Of a stretch of 64,000 bases of DNA, positions 1,245 through 15,274 are shown piece after piece. Where the stretch lies: the NCBI RefSeq assembly GCF_902713615.1, contig NC_052160.1, forward strand, positions 137,930,737 to 137,994,736, read 5' to 3'. This DNA comes from Scyliorhinus canicula (lineage: Eukaryota). Position 1 is the stretch's first letter, and each line of letters begins with the position of its first letter. The notes beneath the pieces are model-generated. The model saw only the letters and a list, made by a program, of their open reading frames with translations. It did not search any database and was not told the origin of the DNA. The position numbers were made by a program, and so were the translations under genes.

Positions 1245-2474
1245 CGCCAGGTCCTCTTTAACGTTATAGAATTGAGGGCATTGGCCCTTGAGCTAACCGT
1301 CTGTCAGGTGGCGCATGACACGTTGGAGCAGGGGATCGTCGGCCATCTCACGACAATTCTGGATGAGTTGTTCATCCGTGGCGGGCAGATTGGATGCGGC
1401 GAATGCCACATGAGCATCAATCTGGCACACGAAGCCCGCTGGGTCGCAGGATGTGGTGACAGATCGGGAGAGTGCATCGGCAACGGTGAGCCCCTTACCC
1501 GGGGTGTAGACGAGCTCGAAGTCGTACCGCCTGAGTTTAAGGAGAATGTGCTGCAGGCGCGGCGTCGTGTCGTTAAAGTCTTCTTGAATGATATTGACCA
1601 GTGGCCTGTGGTCTGTCTCGACTGTGAACTTTGGAAGTCCATTGACATAGTCATGGAATTTGACGACTCCGGCAAGAAGGCCCAGGCACTCTTTTTCAAT
1701 TTGCGCATAGCACTGTTCGGTGGGCGTCATTGGATTGGATTGGATTGGATTGGATTTGTTTATTGTCACGTGTACCGAGGTACAGTGAAAAGTATTTTTA
1801 TGCAAGCAGCTCAACAGATCATTCAGTACATGGAAGAAAAGGGAATTAAACAAAATTCAAGAAAAGACAAGAAAATACATAATAGGGCAACACAAGATAT
1901 ACAATGTAACTACATAAGCATTGGCATCGGATGAAGCATACAGGGTGTAGTGTTAATGAGGTCAGTCAATAAGAGGGTCATTTAGGAGTCTGGTGACAGT
2001 GGGGAAGAAGCTGTTTTTGAGTCTGTTCGTGCGTGTTCTCAGACTCCTGTATCTCCTGCCCGATGGAAGAAGTTGGAAGAGTGAGTAAGCCGGGTGGGAG
2101 GGATCCTTGATTATGCTGCCCGCTTTCCCCCGGCAGCGGGAGGTGTAGATGGAGTCAATGGGTGGGAGGCAGGTTCGTGTGATGGACTGGGCGGTATTCA
2201 CGACTCTCTGAAATTCCTTGCGGTCCTGGGCCGAGCAGTTGCCATACCAGGCTGTGATGCAGCCCGATAGGATGCTTTCTATAGTGCATCTGTAAAAGTT
2301 GGTAAGGATTAATGTGGACATGCCAAATTTCCTTAGTTTCCTGAGGAAGTATAGGCGCTGTTGTGCTTTCTTGGTGATAGCGTCGACGTGGGCGGACCAG
2401 GACAGATTTTTGGTGATGTGCACCCCTAGGAATTTGAAACTGCTAACCATCTCCACCTCGGCCCCGTTGATGCT

Positions 2475-5400
2475 TGGGGTGAATGTGATTCACACTATAT
2501 ATAGTTGCCAATATCACTCCATGTATATATGTTCATTATCTACCCGTTGTAAGAGCAATGCTGTATATAGTTGCCAAAATAACTCCGTGTATATATGTTC
2601 ACTATCCACCATTGTAAGTGCATTTGCACTATCCGACCGTCAGGGGGAGTCGCTCTGGGAGTACGCGAGAGTTTGTACTGGGCTCCTCCCTTGGCTCCGC
2701 CCAGGACTCCTCCCCCTGGGGCCGACGTATAAAGGCAAGTGCCTTAGAGCCAGCCTGCCAGTTCATCTGAAGTTCAGCGACGAATAGGCTGGCTCTGTTG
2801 TAAATGTATTAAAGCCTCTGTTCAGATCCAACTACACATGTTCGCTGAATTGATGGTTCCATCAATTTAAGAAACGCTGCGGCCTATGCTCAGGCTCCGC
2901 CCCCTCCCACCACGTGTGATCCATGGGGGCCGCCATCTTGGCAAACCTCCACCATGCGGCCGGCCATGTGCGATTCATGGGGGCCACCATCTTGGACGCC
3001 ATCTTCATCACCACTCTCCACGTGCGATCCACGGGCCCTAGCTGCATCCCCAGACTCAAACAGCTCATCAGAGGAGTACGACCTCCCCGAGCAGTCACCA
3101 CATGGCCCGCAACTCAGCGCAGTGTTCCTGCATCAAGCTCGCCAGAACGCAGCGGCATCTACTCGACAGGACACCCGATCGGAAGAATTCGACTCCCCCT
3201 GGCACCCAACACGCGGCCCGCAACTCAACGCGGTCACCCTCGACCAATCTCGCCCCTAGCATCTGAGAAATTCGATGACGGAGGCCCAGATCAACGGGTA
3301 CAACACATCGTGCCTCTTCGACTCCGGGAGCACAGAGAGCTTCATACACCCAGAGCTGGTAAGACGCTGTTCACTCCCTATTTATCCCGTCAACCAAACT
3401 ATCGCCCTCGCTTCGGGCTCCCATTCCATCCAAATCCAAGGCCGCACTACAGCAACGCTAACGATTCGAGGCGCTAGCTATTCTAAATTTAAACTGTATG
3501 TCTTGCCCGACCTCTGCGCGCCACTCCTCTTAGGCTTGGATTTCCCATGTAATCTCAAGAGTCTCACCCTCAGCTTCGGCGGGCCCCTGCCCCCACTCAC
3601 TATCTGCAGCCTCGCCACGCTGCGCATCGCCCCCCCTCCTCTCTTCGCCAACCTCACCCTGGATTGCAAACCGGTAGCCACCCACAGCAGCCGGTACATC
3701 CTGCAGGATAGGGTATTTATCAGAACGGAGGTCCGAAGGCTGCTCAGTGAGGGGATCATAGAGGCCAGAAACAGTCCCTGTAGTGGTGGTCGTCAAGACC
3801 GGGGAAAAATTCCGCATGGTCGTCGACTATAGCCAGGCCATCAATCGCTTTACGCTCCTAGATGCGTATCCCCTCCCCAGAATTGCAGACATGGTTAATC
3901 AGATCGCCCAATATCGGGTATTTTCCACGGTGGATCTGAAGTCTGCATACCACCAGCTCCCAATCCGCCCGGAGGACCGCCACTACACGGCGTTCGAGGC
4001 CGTTGGCCGCCTCTTCCATTTCCTCCGGGTTCCCTTTGGCGTCACTATCGGGGTTTCGGGGTTTCGGTGTTCCAACGAGCAATGGACCGAATGGTAGACC
4101 AGTACGGGCTGCGGGCCACATTTCCGTATCTGGATAATGTTACCATCTGCGGCCATGACCAGCAGGACCACGACGCCAACCTCCATTGTTTTCTCCAGAC
4201 GGCCCAAAAAGTAAACCTTGCATATAACAAGGAGAAATGCGTGTTCTGCACAAACAGACTAGCCACCCTCGGCTACGTCGTGGAGAACGGAGTCCTGGGT
4301 CCAGACCCGGACCGAATACCCCTCCCCCATGACCCCAAGGCCCTCAAACGGTGCTTGGGGCTCTTTTCGTACTACACCCAGTGGGTCCCCCAATATGCGG
4401 ACAAAGCCCACCCATTCTTCAAGGCCACACTATTTCCCCTGTCTGCTGAGGCGCGCCAGGCCTTCAGCTGCATCAGGGACGACACCGCCAAAGCAGCCAT
4501 GCGGGCGGTGGATGAATCCACTCCCTTTCAGGTTGTGAGTGACGCCTCAGAGATAGCGCCAGCAGCCACTTTAAACCAAGCAGGGCGGCCCGTTGCATTT
4601 TTCTCCCATACCCTATCCGCTTCAGAACTCCGACACTCCTCAGTCGAGAAGGAAGCACAAGCCATCGTGGAGGCTATCCGACACTGGGGGCACTACATCG
4701 CAGGGAGGAGGTTCACCCTCATTACCGACCAACGGTCGGTCGCCTTCATGTTCGACAACTCGCAAAGGGGCAAAATTAAAAATGACAAAATTCTTCGGTG
4801 GAGGATTGAACTCTCCACCTACAATTACGATATCAAATATCGACCGGGGAAGCTCAATGAGCCCTCGGATGCCCTATCCCGCGGGACATGCGCCAGCGCG
4901 CAAATCAGCCACCTAAAAGCCATCCACAATGACCTCTGCCACCCAGGGGTCACCCGGCTCGCCCACTACATCAGAGCCCGAAACCTGCCTTTCTCCAACG
5001 AGGAGGTAAAAGCGGTCACCAGGGACTGCCCGATCTGTGCGGAGTGCAAACTGCACTTCTATAGACCAGACAGGGCCCACCTGGTCAATGCTTCTAGGCC
5101 CTTTGAACGCCTTGCGATCGATTTCAAAGGGCCACTCCCCTCCACTAACAAAACATTTACTTCCTCAACATTATTGACGAGTTCTCCCGATTCCCCTTCA
5201 CCATCCCATGCCCCGACATGACCTCCCACACAGTCATTAGGGCCCTGCATAGCGTCTTCACCCTGTTCGGTTTCCCCAGCTACGTGCACAGCGACCGGGG
5301 TTCGTCCTTTATGAGTGACGAGCTGCGTCAGTACCTGCTCGACAAGGGCATCGCCTCGAGCAGGACTACCAGCTACAACCCCAGGGGGAACGGACAGGTG

Positions 5401-6482
5401 GAGAGGGAGAACGCGACGCTCTGGAAGACCGTCCTACTGACCCTCAGGTCCAGGAAACTCCAAGTTTCCCAATGGCAGGAAGTCCTTCCTGACGCGCTCC
5501 ACGCAATTAGATCCCTCCTGTGTACAGCTATCAACCAAACCCCCCACTAGCGGCTCTTCATTTTTTCCAGGGGCACTACCACAGAGGTCTCACTTCCGGC
5601 ATGGCTGTGGACGCCAGGCCCGGTTCTCCTAAGGAAGCACGTCAGGGCGCACAAGACCGACCTCATTGTTGAAAAGGTGCGCCTGCTTCATTCCAACCCA
5701 CAGTACGCATTTGTTGAGTTCCCGGACGGTCGCCAGGACACAGTATCCCTCTGGGACCTGGCACCCGCTGGATCTAGCCCCCCATCTACCCCCACCGAGG
5801 AACTCCTTTCCCCGTTCCCTATGCGTCCGCCCTCTTGCGCCCCCGAATCTGCGAGCTCACCCCACCAGTCCCGAGCGCCAGCACCAGCCCGCCCCCCGCG
5901 CTCCCACCTCCATTCGACCAGGAGGTGTATGAGGCTCGGACAAGACTCGCACCGGAGCCAGCAACCGTACCCCAGACCTCGACGCCCGCCCAGCCACCGC
6001 AAGAGGCTGCAACCCCGGTGCTCCGCAGATCAAAACGGACAATTTTTCCACCGGACAGACTGACTCTTTGAGCCATCACCCCCGCCGGACTTGATTTTTT
6101 TTAACAGGGGGTGAATGTGGTGAATGTGATTCACACTATATATAGTTGCCAATATCACTCCATGTATATATGTTCGTTATCTACCCGTTGTAAGATCAAT
6201 GCTGTATATAGTTGCCAATATAACCCCGTGTATATATGTTCACTATCCACCATTGTAAGTGCAGTTGCACTATCCGACCACCAGGGGGAGTCGCTCTGGG
6301 AGTACGCGAGAGTTTGTACTGGGCTTCTCCCTTGGCTCCGCCCAGGATTCCTCCCCCTGGGGCCCATGTATAAAGGTCAGTGCCTTAGAGCCAGCCTGCC
6401 AGTTCATCGGAAGTTCAACGACGAATAGGCTGCCTCTGTTCAGATCCAACTACACATGTTCGCTGAATTGATGGTTCCATCA
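2475..6482 (+). mobile_element. Inner Ty3/Gypsy LTR retrotransposon, gag-deleted, two LTRs, TSD ATGCT
   Basis: LTRs 2475-2864 and 6116-6482 (TG..CA, about 16 substitutions plus one 23-bp indel). ATGCT at 2470-2474 and 6483-6487. PPT AACAGGGGGTGAA at 6103-6115. PR-RT-RH-INT fragments at 3275-5550. Confidence 0.95.
3275..5550 (+). pseudogene. Inner Gypsy pol (PR, RT, RNase H, integrase), frameshifted
   Basis: CLFDSGSTESF; RMVVDYSQAIN..DLKSAYHQ; YLDNVTI; SDASE..EKEAQAI..TDQRS; HNDLCHPG..CPICAEC; HSDRGSSF..GNGQVEREN. Confidence 0.9.
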
Positions 6483-6932
6483 ATGCTGACAGGGGTGTGT
6501 ACAGTACTTTGCTTCCTGAAGTCGATGACCAGCTCTTTAGTTTTGCTGGCATTAAGGGAGAGATTGTTGTCATTACACCACTCCACTAGGTTCTCTATCT
6601 CCCTCCTGTATTCGGACTCGTCGTTATTCGAGATCCGGCCCACTATGGTCGTATCGTTAGCAAACTTGTAGATGGAGTTGGAACCAAGTTTTGCCATGCA
6701 GTCGTGTGTGTACAGGGAGTAGAGTAGGGGGCTAAGTACGCAGCCTTGCGGGGCACCGGTATTGAGGACTATTGTGGAGGAGGTGTTGTTGCTCATTCTT
6801 ACTGACTGTGGTCTGTTGGTCAGAAAGTCAAGGATCCAGTTGCAGAGTGGAGAGCCAAGTCCTAGGTTTTGGAGCTTTGATATGAGCTTGGCTGGGATTA
6901 TAGTGTTGAAGGCGGAGCTGTAGTCAATATCG

Positions 6933-7166
6933 GGGCAGCAGGGTAGCATGGTGGTTAGCATCAATGCTTCACAGCTCCAGGGTCCCAGGTTCGATTCCCG
7001 GCTGGGTCACTGTCTGTGTGGAGTCTGCACGTCCTCCCCCTGTGTGCGTGGGTTTCCTCCGGGTGCTCCGGTTTCCTCCCACAGTCCAAAGATGTGCGGG
7101 TTAGGTGGATTGGCCATGCTAAAATTGCCCGTAGTGTCCTAAAAAGTGCTGTACTGTTCTATGTTC
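6933..7166 (+). mobile_element. HE1/V-SINE-like tRNA-derived SINE, internally deleted, inserted in the Rex1 RT
   Basis: A/B-box head (GGTGGTTAGC..GGTTCGATTCCC) and tail TGTACTGTTCTATGTTCTA. The LINE reads through as GTAGTCAATA|AATAGGAGC. Confidence 0.85.
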
Positions 7167-7891
7167 TAAATAGGAGCTTGATGTAGGAGTCCTTGTTTTT
7201 GAGATGCTCTAGGGATGAGTGTAGGGCCAGGGAAATGGTGACTGATGTGGACCGGTTGCGACGGTATGCGAATTGAAGTGGGTCAAGACGTTCCGGGAGT
7301 ATGGAGGTGATGCGCTTCATGATCAGCCTCTCAAAGCACTTCATTACAACTGACGTCAGGGCCACCGGGCGGTAATCATTGAGGAACGTTGCCTGGTTCT
7401 TCTTTGGTACCGGTATGATGGTGGTCTTCTTGAAGCAGGTGGGAACCTCGGAGTGGAGTAGGGACAGGTTAAAGATGTCTGTGAATACCTCTGCCAGCTG
7501 GTATGCGCAGGCTCTGAGTGCACGACCAGGGATCCCGTCCGGGCCCATCGCCTTCCGTGGGTTCACTTTCAGGAAGGCCGATCTGACTTTGGAAACTGTG
7601 ATGTTGGGTATGGGTGAATTATGGGCTGCTGGGGCACTCGACAGCGGATTGTTGGTTACCTGCTCAAACCGAGCATAGAATGCATTAAGTTCATCGTGGA
7701 GGGGTGCGCTGCTGCCTGAGATACTGCTCGGCTTCGCTTTGTAGCCCGTTATGTTGTTTAGTCCTTGCCACAACCGCCGAGAGTCTGTCTGTGACTCTAG
7801 CTTAGTTTGATATTCTCTCTTGGCATCTCGGATGGCTTTGCGGAGGTCGTACCTGGATTTCTTGTATAGGACAGGGTCGCCTGCCTTGAAC

Positions 7892-8093
7892 GGGGGTCTG
7901 ACCTCTCCCCCCGCCCCCAGTAGACTCTCAATGGGAAGCGCTAGCATAGATTTTTAAATAAATTTCCGTCCCTCCGCCGAAAAACTCCTCCGCCGAATCG
8001 GCCACGCCGAAACGTCCCATTCCAATCGGCTACGCCGAACTGGCCCCGCCGAATCGGCCACGCCGAACTGGCCACGCCGAAACGTCCCATCCC
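7892..8093. repeat. Foreign cassette with 14-bp-periodic CGCCGAA repeats, possibly a DNA-transposon end
   Basis: CGCCGAA at 7975, 7991, 8005, 8033, 8047, 8061 and 8075. It sits between LINE ..CAIQP and FKAGDP.. residues. Confidence 0.55.
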
Positions 8094-8732
8094 CCAGGTT
8101 GTATGGCACAGTCCGGTGAGGCGGGGGTGAGCCATGTCTCTGTGAAACAGAGCACACAGCAGTCTCTTACTTCCCTCTGAGAGGTAAGTCTGGAGTTAAG
8201 TTCATCCAGCTTGTTTTCGATCGCTTGGACGTTTGAAGGAGTATGCTGGGGAGAGGGGTCTTGAAACCGCGTTGCTTCAGTTTCACCTGCAGTCCGCTGC
8301 GTTTCCCTCGCTTCCTCGGTCGGCGGCTGCTGCTGGATGATCCTGGGATCCAATGGGAGACGTCTGCCCTTGTGGAAGGTAGGTGGTTGCGTCTGGTGGT
8401 GTCCAGGGCGCTAGAGACGTCCAGGGCGCTGTTTACATTTCCGGGGTCGCGTCTGGCAGGGCCCCGGGCGCTGGTTGAGGTAGAGGGGTTGCTGGGGGGG
8501 TGAGTTTGCGATCCGGATGGGTCCCGGCGTTCTGCGGGCGCGGGAATACCTTCCAGCGCGTTCGGGTCCTTGCGCGCGGTCTCCGTTGTTTTTGGAGTCG
8601 TGGGCAGGGGCTTCCTGGGGCAGATTGGGCTAGGTCCCATGGTCTGTTCCCTCCCTGGGTGCTCCCGGGGTCGGATCTTGAAGTCGGCACGGTGGGGCCT
8701 CCATGTGGATTTTTCTTTCTTCCATCACCAGG

Positions 8733-9262
8733 TAGGTCGGGTTCCTGGGCGGGGCCTCTCCGGGTCGGGTCGCTGGGCGGGGTCTCTCCGGGTCGGGTTG
8801 CTGGGCGGGGCCTCTCCGGGTCGGGTCGCTGGGCGGGGTCTCTCCGGGTCGGGTTGCTGGGCGGGGTCTCTCCGGGTCGGGTTGCTGGGCGGGGCCTCTC
8901 CGGGTCGGGTCGCTGGGCGGGGCCTCTCCGGGTCGGGTCGCTGGGCGGGGCCTCTCCGGGTCGGGTCGCTGGGCGGGGTCTCTCCGGGTCGGGTCGCTGG
9001 GCGGGGTCTCTCCGGGTCGGGTTGCTGGGCGGGGCCTCTCCGGGTCGGGTCGCTGGGCGGGGTCTCTCCGGGTCGGGTCGCTGGGCGGGGTCTCTCCGGG
9101 TCGGGTTACTGGCGGGGCCTCTCTGGGTCGGGTCGCTGGGCGGGTCTCTCCGGGTCGGGTTGCTGGGCGGGGCCTCTCCGGGTCGGGTCGCTGGGCGGGG
9201 TCTCTCCGGGTCGGGTCGCTGGGCGGGGCCTCTCCGGGTCGGGTCGCTGGGCGGGGCCTCTC
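8733..9262. repeat. 28-bp tandem minisatellite (18 full units plus 1 degenerate) in the LINE 5' UTR
   Basis: Unit CGGGTCGGGTYGCTGGGCGGGGYCTCTC starting at 8761, 8789, 8817 ... 9235; two units are 27 bp. Confidence 0.97.
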
Positions 9263-9642
9263 GGGGTCGCGTTGGGCCGGGTCTTGCCGTCGGCGGTCGG
9301 GTCGGGAGCTCCGGGGACTAGACCGGGCGATCCGGGGGCTGGCGTCGGTAGTTAGGCCGGGTTTGGAGCTCCGAGGCCTGGGTCAGCTCCAAATCGAAGT
9401 CTTTACTTGCGGTTTGGGCCCGATCTTCTTTCAGGTCACGGAGGTCAGGTCGGGTCGGGTCAAAAGGTCTCCAAGGGCCTCGGAGGATCTTCAAGACTGC
9501 AAGAGAAGATAAAAGAGAGAGGTTAGTAATAATATTAGCTTTAGAATTAATTTTTAAAAGGTTAGAACAAGTATAAGTTAAGTTAAAAGTGGATCTGTTG
9601 GGGAGAGCTGGCAGAGAGTCACCTCGCTCCGGCGCCATCTTG

Positions 9643-11142
9643 CACGTGACGCGTATGCGACAGGAGCCCATGAGGAGACGTCATCACGTTGAAGGAGCAC
9701 TGCTCCAAAGCCGGACTGACTGGCATCCGTGGAAATCTTTGTTTCCTTGGCCGGATTGAAAAATGCCAACACCGGGGCCTTGGTCAGCTTCGCCCTGAGT
9801 TCTCGCCATTCTTGTTCGTGGGCGGGGAGCCATTGGAACTCTGTCGTCTTCTTGACCAGGTTCCTGAGAGCCGTGGTGTGGGAAGCGAGGTAGGGATGAA
9901 TTTCCCGAGGAAATTGACCATGCCCAGGAAGCGGAGGACCGCCTTCTTGTCCTCATGGCCTTAATGGCAGATACCTTGTCAGCATCCGGCTGCACGCCAA
10001 ACTGTGAGATGTGGTCTTCGAGGAATTTAATTTCTGTTTGACCAAAGGAGCATTTGGCCCTGTTGAGGTGGAGGCCATGCTTATGGATTCGTCGGAAGAC
10101 GCGTTGGAGGCGATCAATGTGCTCCTGTGGGGTGGTAGACCAGACGATGATGTTGTCCACATACGCGAACCCCTTCAATACCTTCCATCATCTGTTCCAT
10201 AATTCTGTGGAATACTTCCGATGCAGAGATGATGCCAAACGGCAGCCGGTTGTAACAATACCGGCCAAATAGGGTGTTAAAGGTGCAGAGCTTCCGACTG
10301 GATGCGTTGAGTTGGATCTGCCAGAACCCGTTGGATGCATCTGGCTTGGTGAAAGATTTGGCGCGAGCCATCTCACAGGTGAGTTCTTCGCGCTTTGGAA
10401 TGGGATAGTGTTCTCTCATAACATTGCGGTTGAGGTCCTTAGGATCAATACATATACGTAATTCGCCGGATGGTTTTTTCACGCACACCATTGAGCTGAC
10501 CCAGTCAGTCGGTTCCATAACTTTTGAAATTACTCCCTGGTCCTGGAGGTCCTGCAGCTGCTGCTTGAGGTGGTCCTTGAGGGGTGCTAGGACCCTGTGA
10601 GGTGCGTGCACCACAGGCGTGGCATTTGGTTTTAACAAGATTTCATAAGTGTATGGGAGTGTGCCCATGCCCTCGAATACACGGTGGTATTGGTTGATGA
10701 TGGCGTCCAACTGTGTGCGAAAGACACCGTCCTGAGATGCGGAGGCGTCAGCGGGTGACAGGGAGTGAACCCTTTGGACAAGGTTTCGGAGTTTGCATGC
10801 TTGCGCACCAAGTAGGGAGGCTTTAGAGGATCCCACTATTTCGAATGGCAGGTTAGCCTTTAATGACCGGTGCGACATTTCAAGCTGGCAAGAGCCACTG
10901 GCAGCAATGGCATTGCCATTATTGTCCAAAAGCTGGCAGGCGGATGCCAAGATGGTAGGCTTAACATGGAGGCTTTCGAGGTCAATGAGGTTGGCTGAAG
11001 CGCCGGTGTCCAGGCGGAATCGGATGCGAGATCGGTTGACCGTGAGGGTGGCACACCACTCGTCGTCCGGATCAATGCTGAATATTGGGAGAGACTTGGC
11101 TTTTGTCTTCGGGAGCATCTTGTGTTTGGTGATGGTGCCCAC
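9643..11142 (-). pseudogene. Gypsy protease, reverse transcriptase and start of RNase H (frameshifted)
   Basis: FRLDTGASANL; WVSSMVCVKKPSGELRICIDPKDLN; AYVDNII; STDASQSGFGAVLLQ. Confidence 0.9.
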
Positions 11143-14757: not shown

Positions 14758-15084
14758 GTACATGGGAGCCAATTGTATCAGAGATCAGTGGTGTTGTGGG
14801 AAATGTCGCCACTGTACCATGTATGTACACGGAGGAGGAGAAATACTATCAGAAATTCCTGTGTAAAGTCACCTCTATAAATAAATGCACCATTATTGCC
14901 AGCTCTAATGGGGCTGTAACCAATCTGCAAAATGGGAGTGTTTCAATCACTATTAACAATTTTCATAATTTTACTGTTACCCTGGGCAACATTAATAAAG
15001 CTGATGAAGGAGAGTACTGGTGTGGAGCAACAAGAATAACGAACATAAAGATCGTCCAGGTAAAAAATCTGACAACTGCTGAAG
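14758..15084 (+). CDS. CD300/CMRF35/pIgR-like receptor, Ig V-domain exon
   Basis: AG/GT-flanked phase 1-1 exon of 327 bp: TWEPIVSEISGVVGNVATVPCMY..KYYQKFLCK..KC..DEGEYWCG. It has the extra Cys pair typical of the CD300/pIgR family. Confidence 0.88.
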
Positions 15085-15274
15085 GTAAGGGTCAATATAA
15101 AATTATTATAATTCAATCAGTGTTGTATCGAACTCCGAACAGAAACAATTGGTCAATGCCGGTGCGTGAGCTTCACACGAGGCACCTCCTACTCACCCTT
15201 TATCTCACACTTTCAGCATATCCATCGGTCCATTTCCATCTCAATGTCTTTATCTAGCTTCCCATTAAAAACAG

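Follow-up and report, generated by a model that had tools for sequence, protein, structure and literature searches.

Introduction

In CSB-PGBD3, a transposon open reading frame was captured as an alternative terminal exon by way of the transposon's own acceptor. Elements that are copied from RNA are expected to lose introns, and the 5' UTRs of LINEs usually turn over fast. Penelope-like elements are described as keeping a spliceosomal intron despite being copied from RNA (Arkhipova et al. 2003, as cited in PMC2377424 and PMC4209133). The human L1 5' UTR has functional donor and acceptor sites as well as a YY1 site near its 5' end (PMC5860796, which refers to Belancio et al. 2006 for the L1 splice sites). 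Splicing of L1 RNA removes parts of the promoter to give SpIREs, so that propagation at full length relies on unspliced RNA (Larson et al. 2018, PMC5860796). In zebrafish, the LINE ZfL2-1 is cited as carrying splice sites that are functional and influence the expression of host genes (Tamura, Kajikawa & Okada 2007, Gene 390:221; cited in PMC3091869). Here we analysed a defective LINE copy in a 64-kb stretch of DNA from the catshark Scyliorhinus canicula (the window), in which intron-like signals begin 20 nt from the first base of the element, together with related copies from other sharks.

Results

Intron-like signals at the start of a shark LINE

The original prediction, made from the letters of the window, was a 126-nt intron with textbook signals in the 5' UTR of a Rex1/Babar LINE. 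Every position held: the GT, TACTAAC, pyrimidine tract and CAG all lie on the minus strand where they had been claimed, and the segment they delimit is 126 nt long (Table 1). The branch point, tract and AG have the spacing of a U2-type GT-AG intron. The YY1-type motif reported for the element start was likewise found, in that CAAGATGGCGCC at 9642-9631 (element positions 1-12) contains a YY1-type initiator core (AAGATGGCG-type) by motif match. The intron-like segment is AT-rich, at 33% GC overall and 25% in its core, and lies between a GC-richer leader (20 nt, 70%) and downstream 5' UTR (64%).

A strict composite was defined as TACTAAC with at least 16 pyrimidines in 20 nt and YAG, without AG in between. 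It occurs once on both strands of the window (128 kb), compared with 0.025 occurrences expected from 200 block shuffles. The intron-like signals are real and, as set out below, belong to the genuine 5' end of a shark LINE, which has been conserved since ancient times.

Table 1. Features of the LINE copy and of its 5' module, in window coordinates
Feature	Position	Strand	Remarks
Whole LINE copy, CR1/L2/Rex1 group, defective	1729..9642	(-)	split by nested Gypsy, ~2470-6430
(CCAAT)n 3' tail of LINE	1729-1756	(-)	short tandem repeat
PF09004 in LINE copy	1962-2456	(-)	C-terminal piece
RVT_1 in LINE copy	7159-7947 and 6440-6964	(-)	two ORF pieces
14/28-bp tandem repeat replacing most of LINE endonuclease domain	7990-8081		
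LINE ORF start	8167..8640	(-)	ATG at 8640, MGPS..., frameshifted further on
28-bp tandem array in LINE 5' UTR	8735..9269	(-)	TRF, 19 units, GC-rich
GC-rich unique 5' UTR part ("exon 2")	9270..9496	(-)	first ~20 nt conserved, GATCCTCC core
Acceptor CAG	9497..9499	(-)	AG in 7/7 independent copies
Pyrimidine tract	9500..9521	(-)	18/20 nt preceding CAG are pyrimidines
Branch-point consensus TACTAAC	9522..9528	(-)	branch A at 9523, 26 nt from acceptor G
Intron-like AT-rich segment	9497..9622	(-)	126 nt, 33% GC
Donor-like GTGACT	9617..9622	(-)	GAG|GTGACT, GT at 9622-9621; context weak; candidate donor
20-nt leader ("exon 1")	9623..9642	(-)	70% GC; 70-90% identity across copies
Element 5' end, YY1-like box CAAGATGGCGCC	9631..9642	(-)	also contains ATG in Kozak-like context

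The ATG within the YY1-like box opens a frame of 106 codons (9642-9318, minus strand) that passes through the whole intron-like segment, and the 126-nt length would preserve this frame if the segment were spliced out. In the carpet-shark copy this frame is not open, so it is probably meaningless. An Rfam scan of 9200-9750 returned no family.

The LINE copy, its clade and its nesting

The window LINE is collinear with copies from Scyliorhinus torazame (85-94% identity), and its closest proteins are also from that species (84-85% identity). The start of its ORF is homologous to positions 9069-9791 of the S. torazame locus L001 and to the annotated proteins P0121 and P0124. The N-terminus of an EEP endonuclease is encoded, with a fuller EEP in relatives (PF03372 among the hits). 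The window copy lacks the greater part of the endonuclease domain (about 560 bp in relatives) at 7950-8130. The 28-bp array of the 5' UTR, with its 19 units, has only two or three in S. torazame copies L001a and L002; its expansion is therefore specific to the window copy or its lineage and is not a feature of the family. The RT region contains a SINE-like insertion (window 7012-7143; L001:8499-8629) of about 130-210 bp, with a GGAGGAAACCGGAGCACCCGGAGGAAACCCACGC core, that is present in every shark locus fetched. It appears to resemble Deu-type SINE cores.

A single ORF with EEP endonuclease and RT, followed by a short-tandem-repeat 3' tail, agrees with Rex1/Babar. However, EEP, RT and a (CCAAT)n tail are features common to CR1 and L2 and are not diagnostic. 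The published Rex1-specific RT primers RTX1-F1 and RTX1-R3 (PMC4635592) have at least six mismatches everywhere in the window at the DNA level, and the LINE protein motif YSSAFNT matches the primer-encoded FSSAFNT at six of seven residues. Judged by these features, the LINE is best placed in the CR1/L2/Rex1 group, an assignment less fine than the original one.

A Gypsy-type element surrounds the LINE on the minus strand, with gag at 12003-11311 and then protease and RT, which extend to about 9650. Near 9643 its RNase H frame is interrupted, to be picked up again at 1728, right after the (CCAAT)n tail. By this interrupted frame, the LINE boundary at 9642 is real. Another Gypsy-type LTR element (2470-6430, plus strand) is nested in the LINE, with 300-bp LTRs at 2475-2774 and 6116-6415 that are 95% identical. 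The nesting thus has three levels: Gypsy in LINE, and LINE in another Gypsy (12003-9643 and 1728-93). No target-site duplication was definable for the window copy or for L002. Elsewhere in the window, an ORF with an Ig V-type domain (14796-15257, plus strand) looks like an immune receptor exon of the CD300/pIgR type.

Independent copies share one 5' end

Related shark loci were fetched via proteins encoded by related LINE copies; within the window itself, no second copy of the LINE 5' region was found. Seven independent insertions were available for comparison: the window copy, S. torazame copies L001a, L001b and L002, copy L003, an old carpet-shark copy represented by the orthologues L005 (Hemiscyllium ocellatum) and L006 (Rhincodon typus), and a Mustelus asterias copy (L008/L009). 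Sequence homologous to 9497..9622 is present in L002, L001b, L005, L006 and L008/L009, and partially in L001a. L001a and L003 lack the outermost 5' sequence, their truncation points lying within the module.

The 5' ends themselves could be compared directly. L002 aligns to window positions 9641-9271 with 87% identity, and its 5' end reads AAGTTGGCGCC. L001b begins CAAGATGGCACC, L005 starts CAAGATGGCACT and L006 starts CAAGACAGCACT. The start nucleotide is common to three independent insertions (the window copy and two from S. torazame) and one ancient carpet-shark copy. As L002, L001b and L005/L006 each have a different upstream flank, position 9642 (+/-1 nt) is the true 5' end of the family. 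This shared start in independent insertions with differing flanks also answers the earlier concern that 9400-9642 might lie outside the LINE: it is LINE sequence.

Two further peculiarities of the copies were noted. In L001b, a MITE-like hairpin of about 170 bp, flanked by duplicated ACATCTTTTATA, has inserted into the intron-like segment (L001:6490-6661, minus strand). L008 and L009 are near-identical LINE copies on two contigs, each preceding histone H2A genes by about 8 kb. From this fixed distance, the copy has evidently multiplied within a histone-cluster repeat unit; five loci of this kind are annotated as genes by RefSeq. Four other loci were set aside. L012 (Mustelus) and L013 (Rhinoraja) are 5'-truncated and uninformative, and L010 and L011, from exon-2 motif scans of metagenome and genome contigs without useful shark DNA, are chance bacterial matches.

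The acceptor half is conserved and the donor is weak

The acceptor AG is kept in all seven independent copies, and the ACTAA core of the branch point in all but L003 (6/7). In copies from five other shark species, these two cores are invariant islands of the 3' half of the module. The pyrimidine tract is near-identical in S. torazame copies and degraded yet recognisable in those from Mustelus and carpet sharks. At the other end of the module, the YY1-like box is conserved in four of five full-length ends. Catshark and carpet-shark copies are 47-75% identical over element positions 1-166, compared with about 32%, not alignable, in the 5' UTR beyond position 166. That the former align and the latter does not indicates that the module as a whole is old and constrained. 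By these alignments, this LINE lineage appears to have carried the module (~165 nt) since before the split of the carpet-shark families. Within the module, the block from branch point to AG is not better conserved than its neighbours (47-59% versus 52-66%), such that promoter constraint on the whole module alone could explain its retention.

The donor presents a different picture. The window donor has C at +5 and G at -3, and it follows a first exon of only 20 nt. The pentamer is GTGAC in the window and L001b, GTGGC in L005/L006 and GCGAC in L002, which is the closest copy. GT is present in four of five full-length ends, in weak context and at a position that shifts by 2-3 nt. The expectation that the signals would be conserved among family copies was therefore borne out for the YY1-like box, branch point, tract and AG, including in distant shark lineages. 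The donor fits it less clearly: its GT is weak, is GC in L002 and is displaced in older copies.

These observations bear on whether the segment is a true 5'-UTR intron. If it were, transcripts from 9642 would be regularly spliced from the GT at 9622 to the AG at 9497, as an aid to export or translation or as a self-limiting switch, and the unspliced fraction would found promoter-competent progeny. The presence of all four signals within a compact 126 nt is consistent with this, as are an AT-rich interior between GC-rich flanks, which resembles intron/exon composition, and a GTGRC pentamer in four of five independent full-length 5' ends. Splicing within the L1 5' UTR and the resulting SpIREs (PMC5860796) provide a precedent. 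Opposing these points is the donor: it is weak in the window, GC in the closest copy, and in L001b, L005 and L006 displaced by 2-3 nt into a poorer context.

Regular splicing might also leave intron-less copies, and the original prediction had proposed looking for genomic copies lacking exactly 9497-9622. Neither the window nor about 250 kb of shark loci yielded a SpIRE-type copy, with the leader joined directly to 9496; none of the seven independent copies has this form. The sample is tiny, too small to count against a true intron: SpIREs are a small fraction of L1 copies (PMC5860796), so zero of seven says little. One apparent spliced copy proved false. An ENA metagenome contig with Mustelus-like DNA (L007) seemed to join CGCCGGAGTGTG directly to GTGTGGACATCC. 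Longer Mustelus sequences (L008/L009) place the real acceptor homologue about 130 nt further upstream, which rules out the spliced reading and identifies the junction as a chance resemblance.

Carpet-shark gene models splice ARPC1A-like exons onto the LINE acceptor

The old carpet-shark copy lies within an annotated gene. Its NCBI models, P0124 in R. typus and P0125 in H. ocellatum, are each 384 residues long, and their first 57 residues match residues 1-57 of ARPC1A (E 1e-23). The same fusion is found in five species: R. typus, H. ocellatum, Stegostoma tigrinum, Chiloscyllium punctatum and C. plagiosum (P0124, P0125, P0252-P0259). The locus spans L006:6001-22411 in R. typus and L005:6001-23512 in H. 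ocellatum. It consists of ARPC1A-like exons 1 and 2 fused to the N-terminal/endonuclease part of the LINE copy, with no RT part after it.

Each exon of the gene models was compared with L005 and L006. On L006, ARPC1A-like exon 1 ends before GTAAGT and exon 2 before GTACAT. The next exon starts at L006:21426, right after the CAG homologous to window 9499-9497, and enters the LINE ORF. Indeed, the homologous AG (L006:21424-21425, L005:22525-22526) is an exon boundary in P0124, P0125 and P0252. Isoform X1 (P0124) joins exon 2 to the LINE AG through the split codon g|gt, encoding Gly (ITG-LEIL). Isoform X2 (P0252) skips exon 2 and joins exon 1 to the same AG through c|gt, encoding Arg (DRT-R-LEIL). 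Both models are explained to the nucleotide by two host donors spliced to one LINE AG. In the NCBI pipeline, alternative isoforms such as those with exon skipping are normally built on transcript evidence. Judged from these computational models, the acceptor half of the LINE can be spliced.

The earlier suggestion that a strong acceptor lets the element capture upstream host transcripts thus gains gene-model support, since in all five carpet-shark species the models connect ARPC1A-like exons to this AG. Between R. typus and H. ocellatum, the LINE-derived exon has a dS of 0.42 and a dN of 0.07 (dN/dS 0.17), and the flanking non-coding DNA of the locus is 74-86% identical. With this dN/dS the fusion looks domesticated, and the ARPC1A-LINE exon is likely a domesticated transposon exon. 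Once domesticated, the carpet-shark acceptor could have been maintained by host selection. A search of annotated proteins for further chimeras of host exons and LINE (query P0124 residues 58-200) returned only this one orthologous carpet-shark gene. As a single orthologous locus, the exon capture indicates competence of the acceptor and not a selected strategy of the LINE.

Discussion

Our preferred reading is that the 5' end of this LINE is a promoter and leader module with a splice-competent acceptor. RNA starting at +1 would be mostly unspliced, and host donors would splice onto the acceptor where a copy lies in an intron. We give this reading about an even chance of being correct. The YY1-like box at the first nucleotides, the 20-nt GC-rich leader and the AT-rich stretch ending in branch point, tract and AG would primarily make up the internal promoter and leader of the element. 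With no donor other than a weak one just 20 nt behind the cap, RNA from +1 would mostly remain unspliced. Since unspliced RNA would be what is copied, the module would be inherited intact.

Different consequences would follow for a sense-oriented copy in a host intron. Strong upstream host donors would splice onto the LINE acceptor, and the resulting chimeric mRNA of host exon and LINE could allow expression of the element independently of its own promoter. One such event in carpet sharks may have given rise to the domesticated ARPC1A-LINE endonuclease-domain gene. If the element's own GT were used now and then, the resulting progeny would be missing parts of the promoter, like L1 SpIREs.

The strongest alternative is that the splice-like motifs are incidental. 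The module would then be conserved solely as an internal promoter (YY1-like box and AT-rich factor sites), the motifs would have no role in the life cycle, and the ARPC1A capture would be a one-off exaptation, as with many intronic transposons. This account fits the conservation of all 165 nt, among them stretches dispensable for splicing, as well as a pyrimidine tract that is not the best-conserved block and a single capture locus among annotated proteins. It fits less well with the rarity of the strict composite by chance, with the invariance of ACTAA and AG in the 3' half among five other shark species, or with the tract of the catshark subfamily, which is almost ideal and not decaying. On balance we consider it possible though rather unlikely that the signals are incidental.

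The preferred reading also has a broader form, in which the LINE lineage kept a 5'-terminal exon trap behind its promoter box across catsharks, a houndshark and carpet sharks. Intronic copies would be expressed from host promoters, unspliced RNA would propagate the module, and the trap would have seeded the ARPC1A-LINE gene. To us this extension seems doubtful, and unlikely to hold in full. Regular removal of the segment as a true intron is, in view of its donor, improbable.

As a promoter and leader module with an acceptor, the shark element can be set beside several known systems. It is a typical EEP-RT LINE and so differs from Penelope-like elements in retroelement class, endonuclease and mechanism. 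As cited, ZfL2-1 is alike in being a fish LINE of the L2/CR1 group with splice sites. CSB-PGBD3 offers a parallel for the carpet-shark fusion: in both, host exons splice onto an acceptor that precedes a transposon ORF, with purifying selection (dN/dS of 0.17 for ARPC1A-LINE). Unlike CSB-PGBD3, the captured unit is the N-terminal/endonuclease part of a LINE and not a DNA transposase. The fusion of ARPC1A with a LINE endonuclease-domain exon in five carpet-shark species appears to be a new example of a transposon domesticated through exon capture.

Similarity to human L1 is closest in layout. Both have a YY1-like site near the 5' end and donor and acceptor signals within the 5' UTR, those of the shark element being predicted. 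In contrast to L1, the intron-like segment of the shark element is set back by just 20 nt from the element's start and spans a short 126 nt, and its branch point is yeast-perfect. L1 5' UTRs are replaced rapidly, but the shark module has been conserved between distinct LINE lineages. Spliced copies, known for L1 as SpIREs, number zero among the seven shark copies. With a near-ideal acceptor module common to LINE copies in Scyliorhinidae, Triakidae and Orectolobiformes, sharks provide a concrete system for the balance between LINE splicing and propagation, as debated for L1 SpIREs. The module also allows testing of whether acceptors at LINE 5' ends hijack host promoters. LINEs with functional splice sites are already known; the shark element stands apart in that its intron-like segment lies at the extreme 5' end, has a near-ideal acceptor and has been retained in LINE copies from three shark families or orders.
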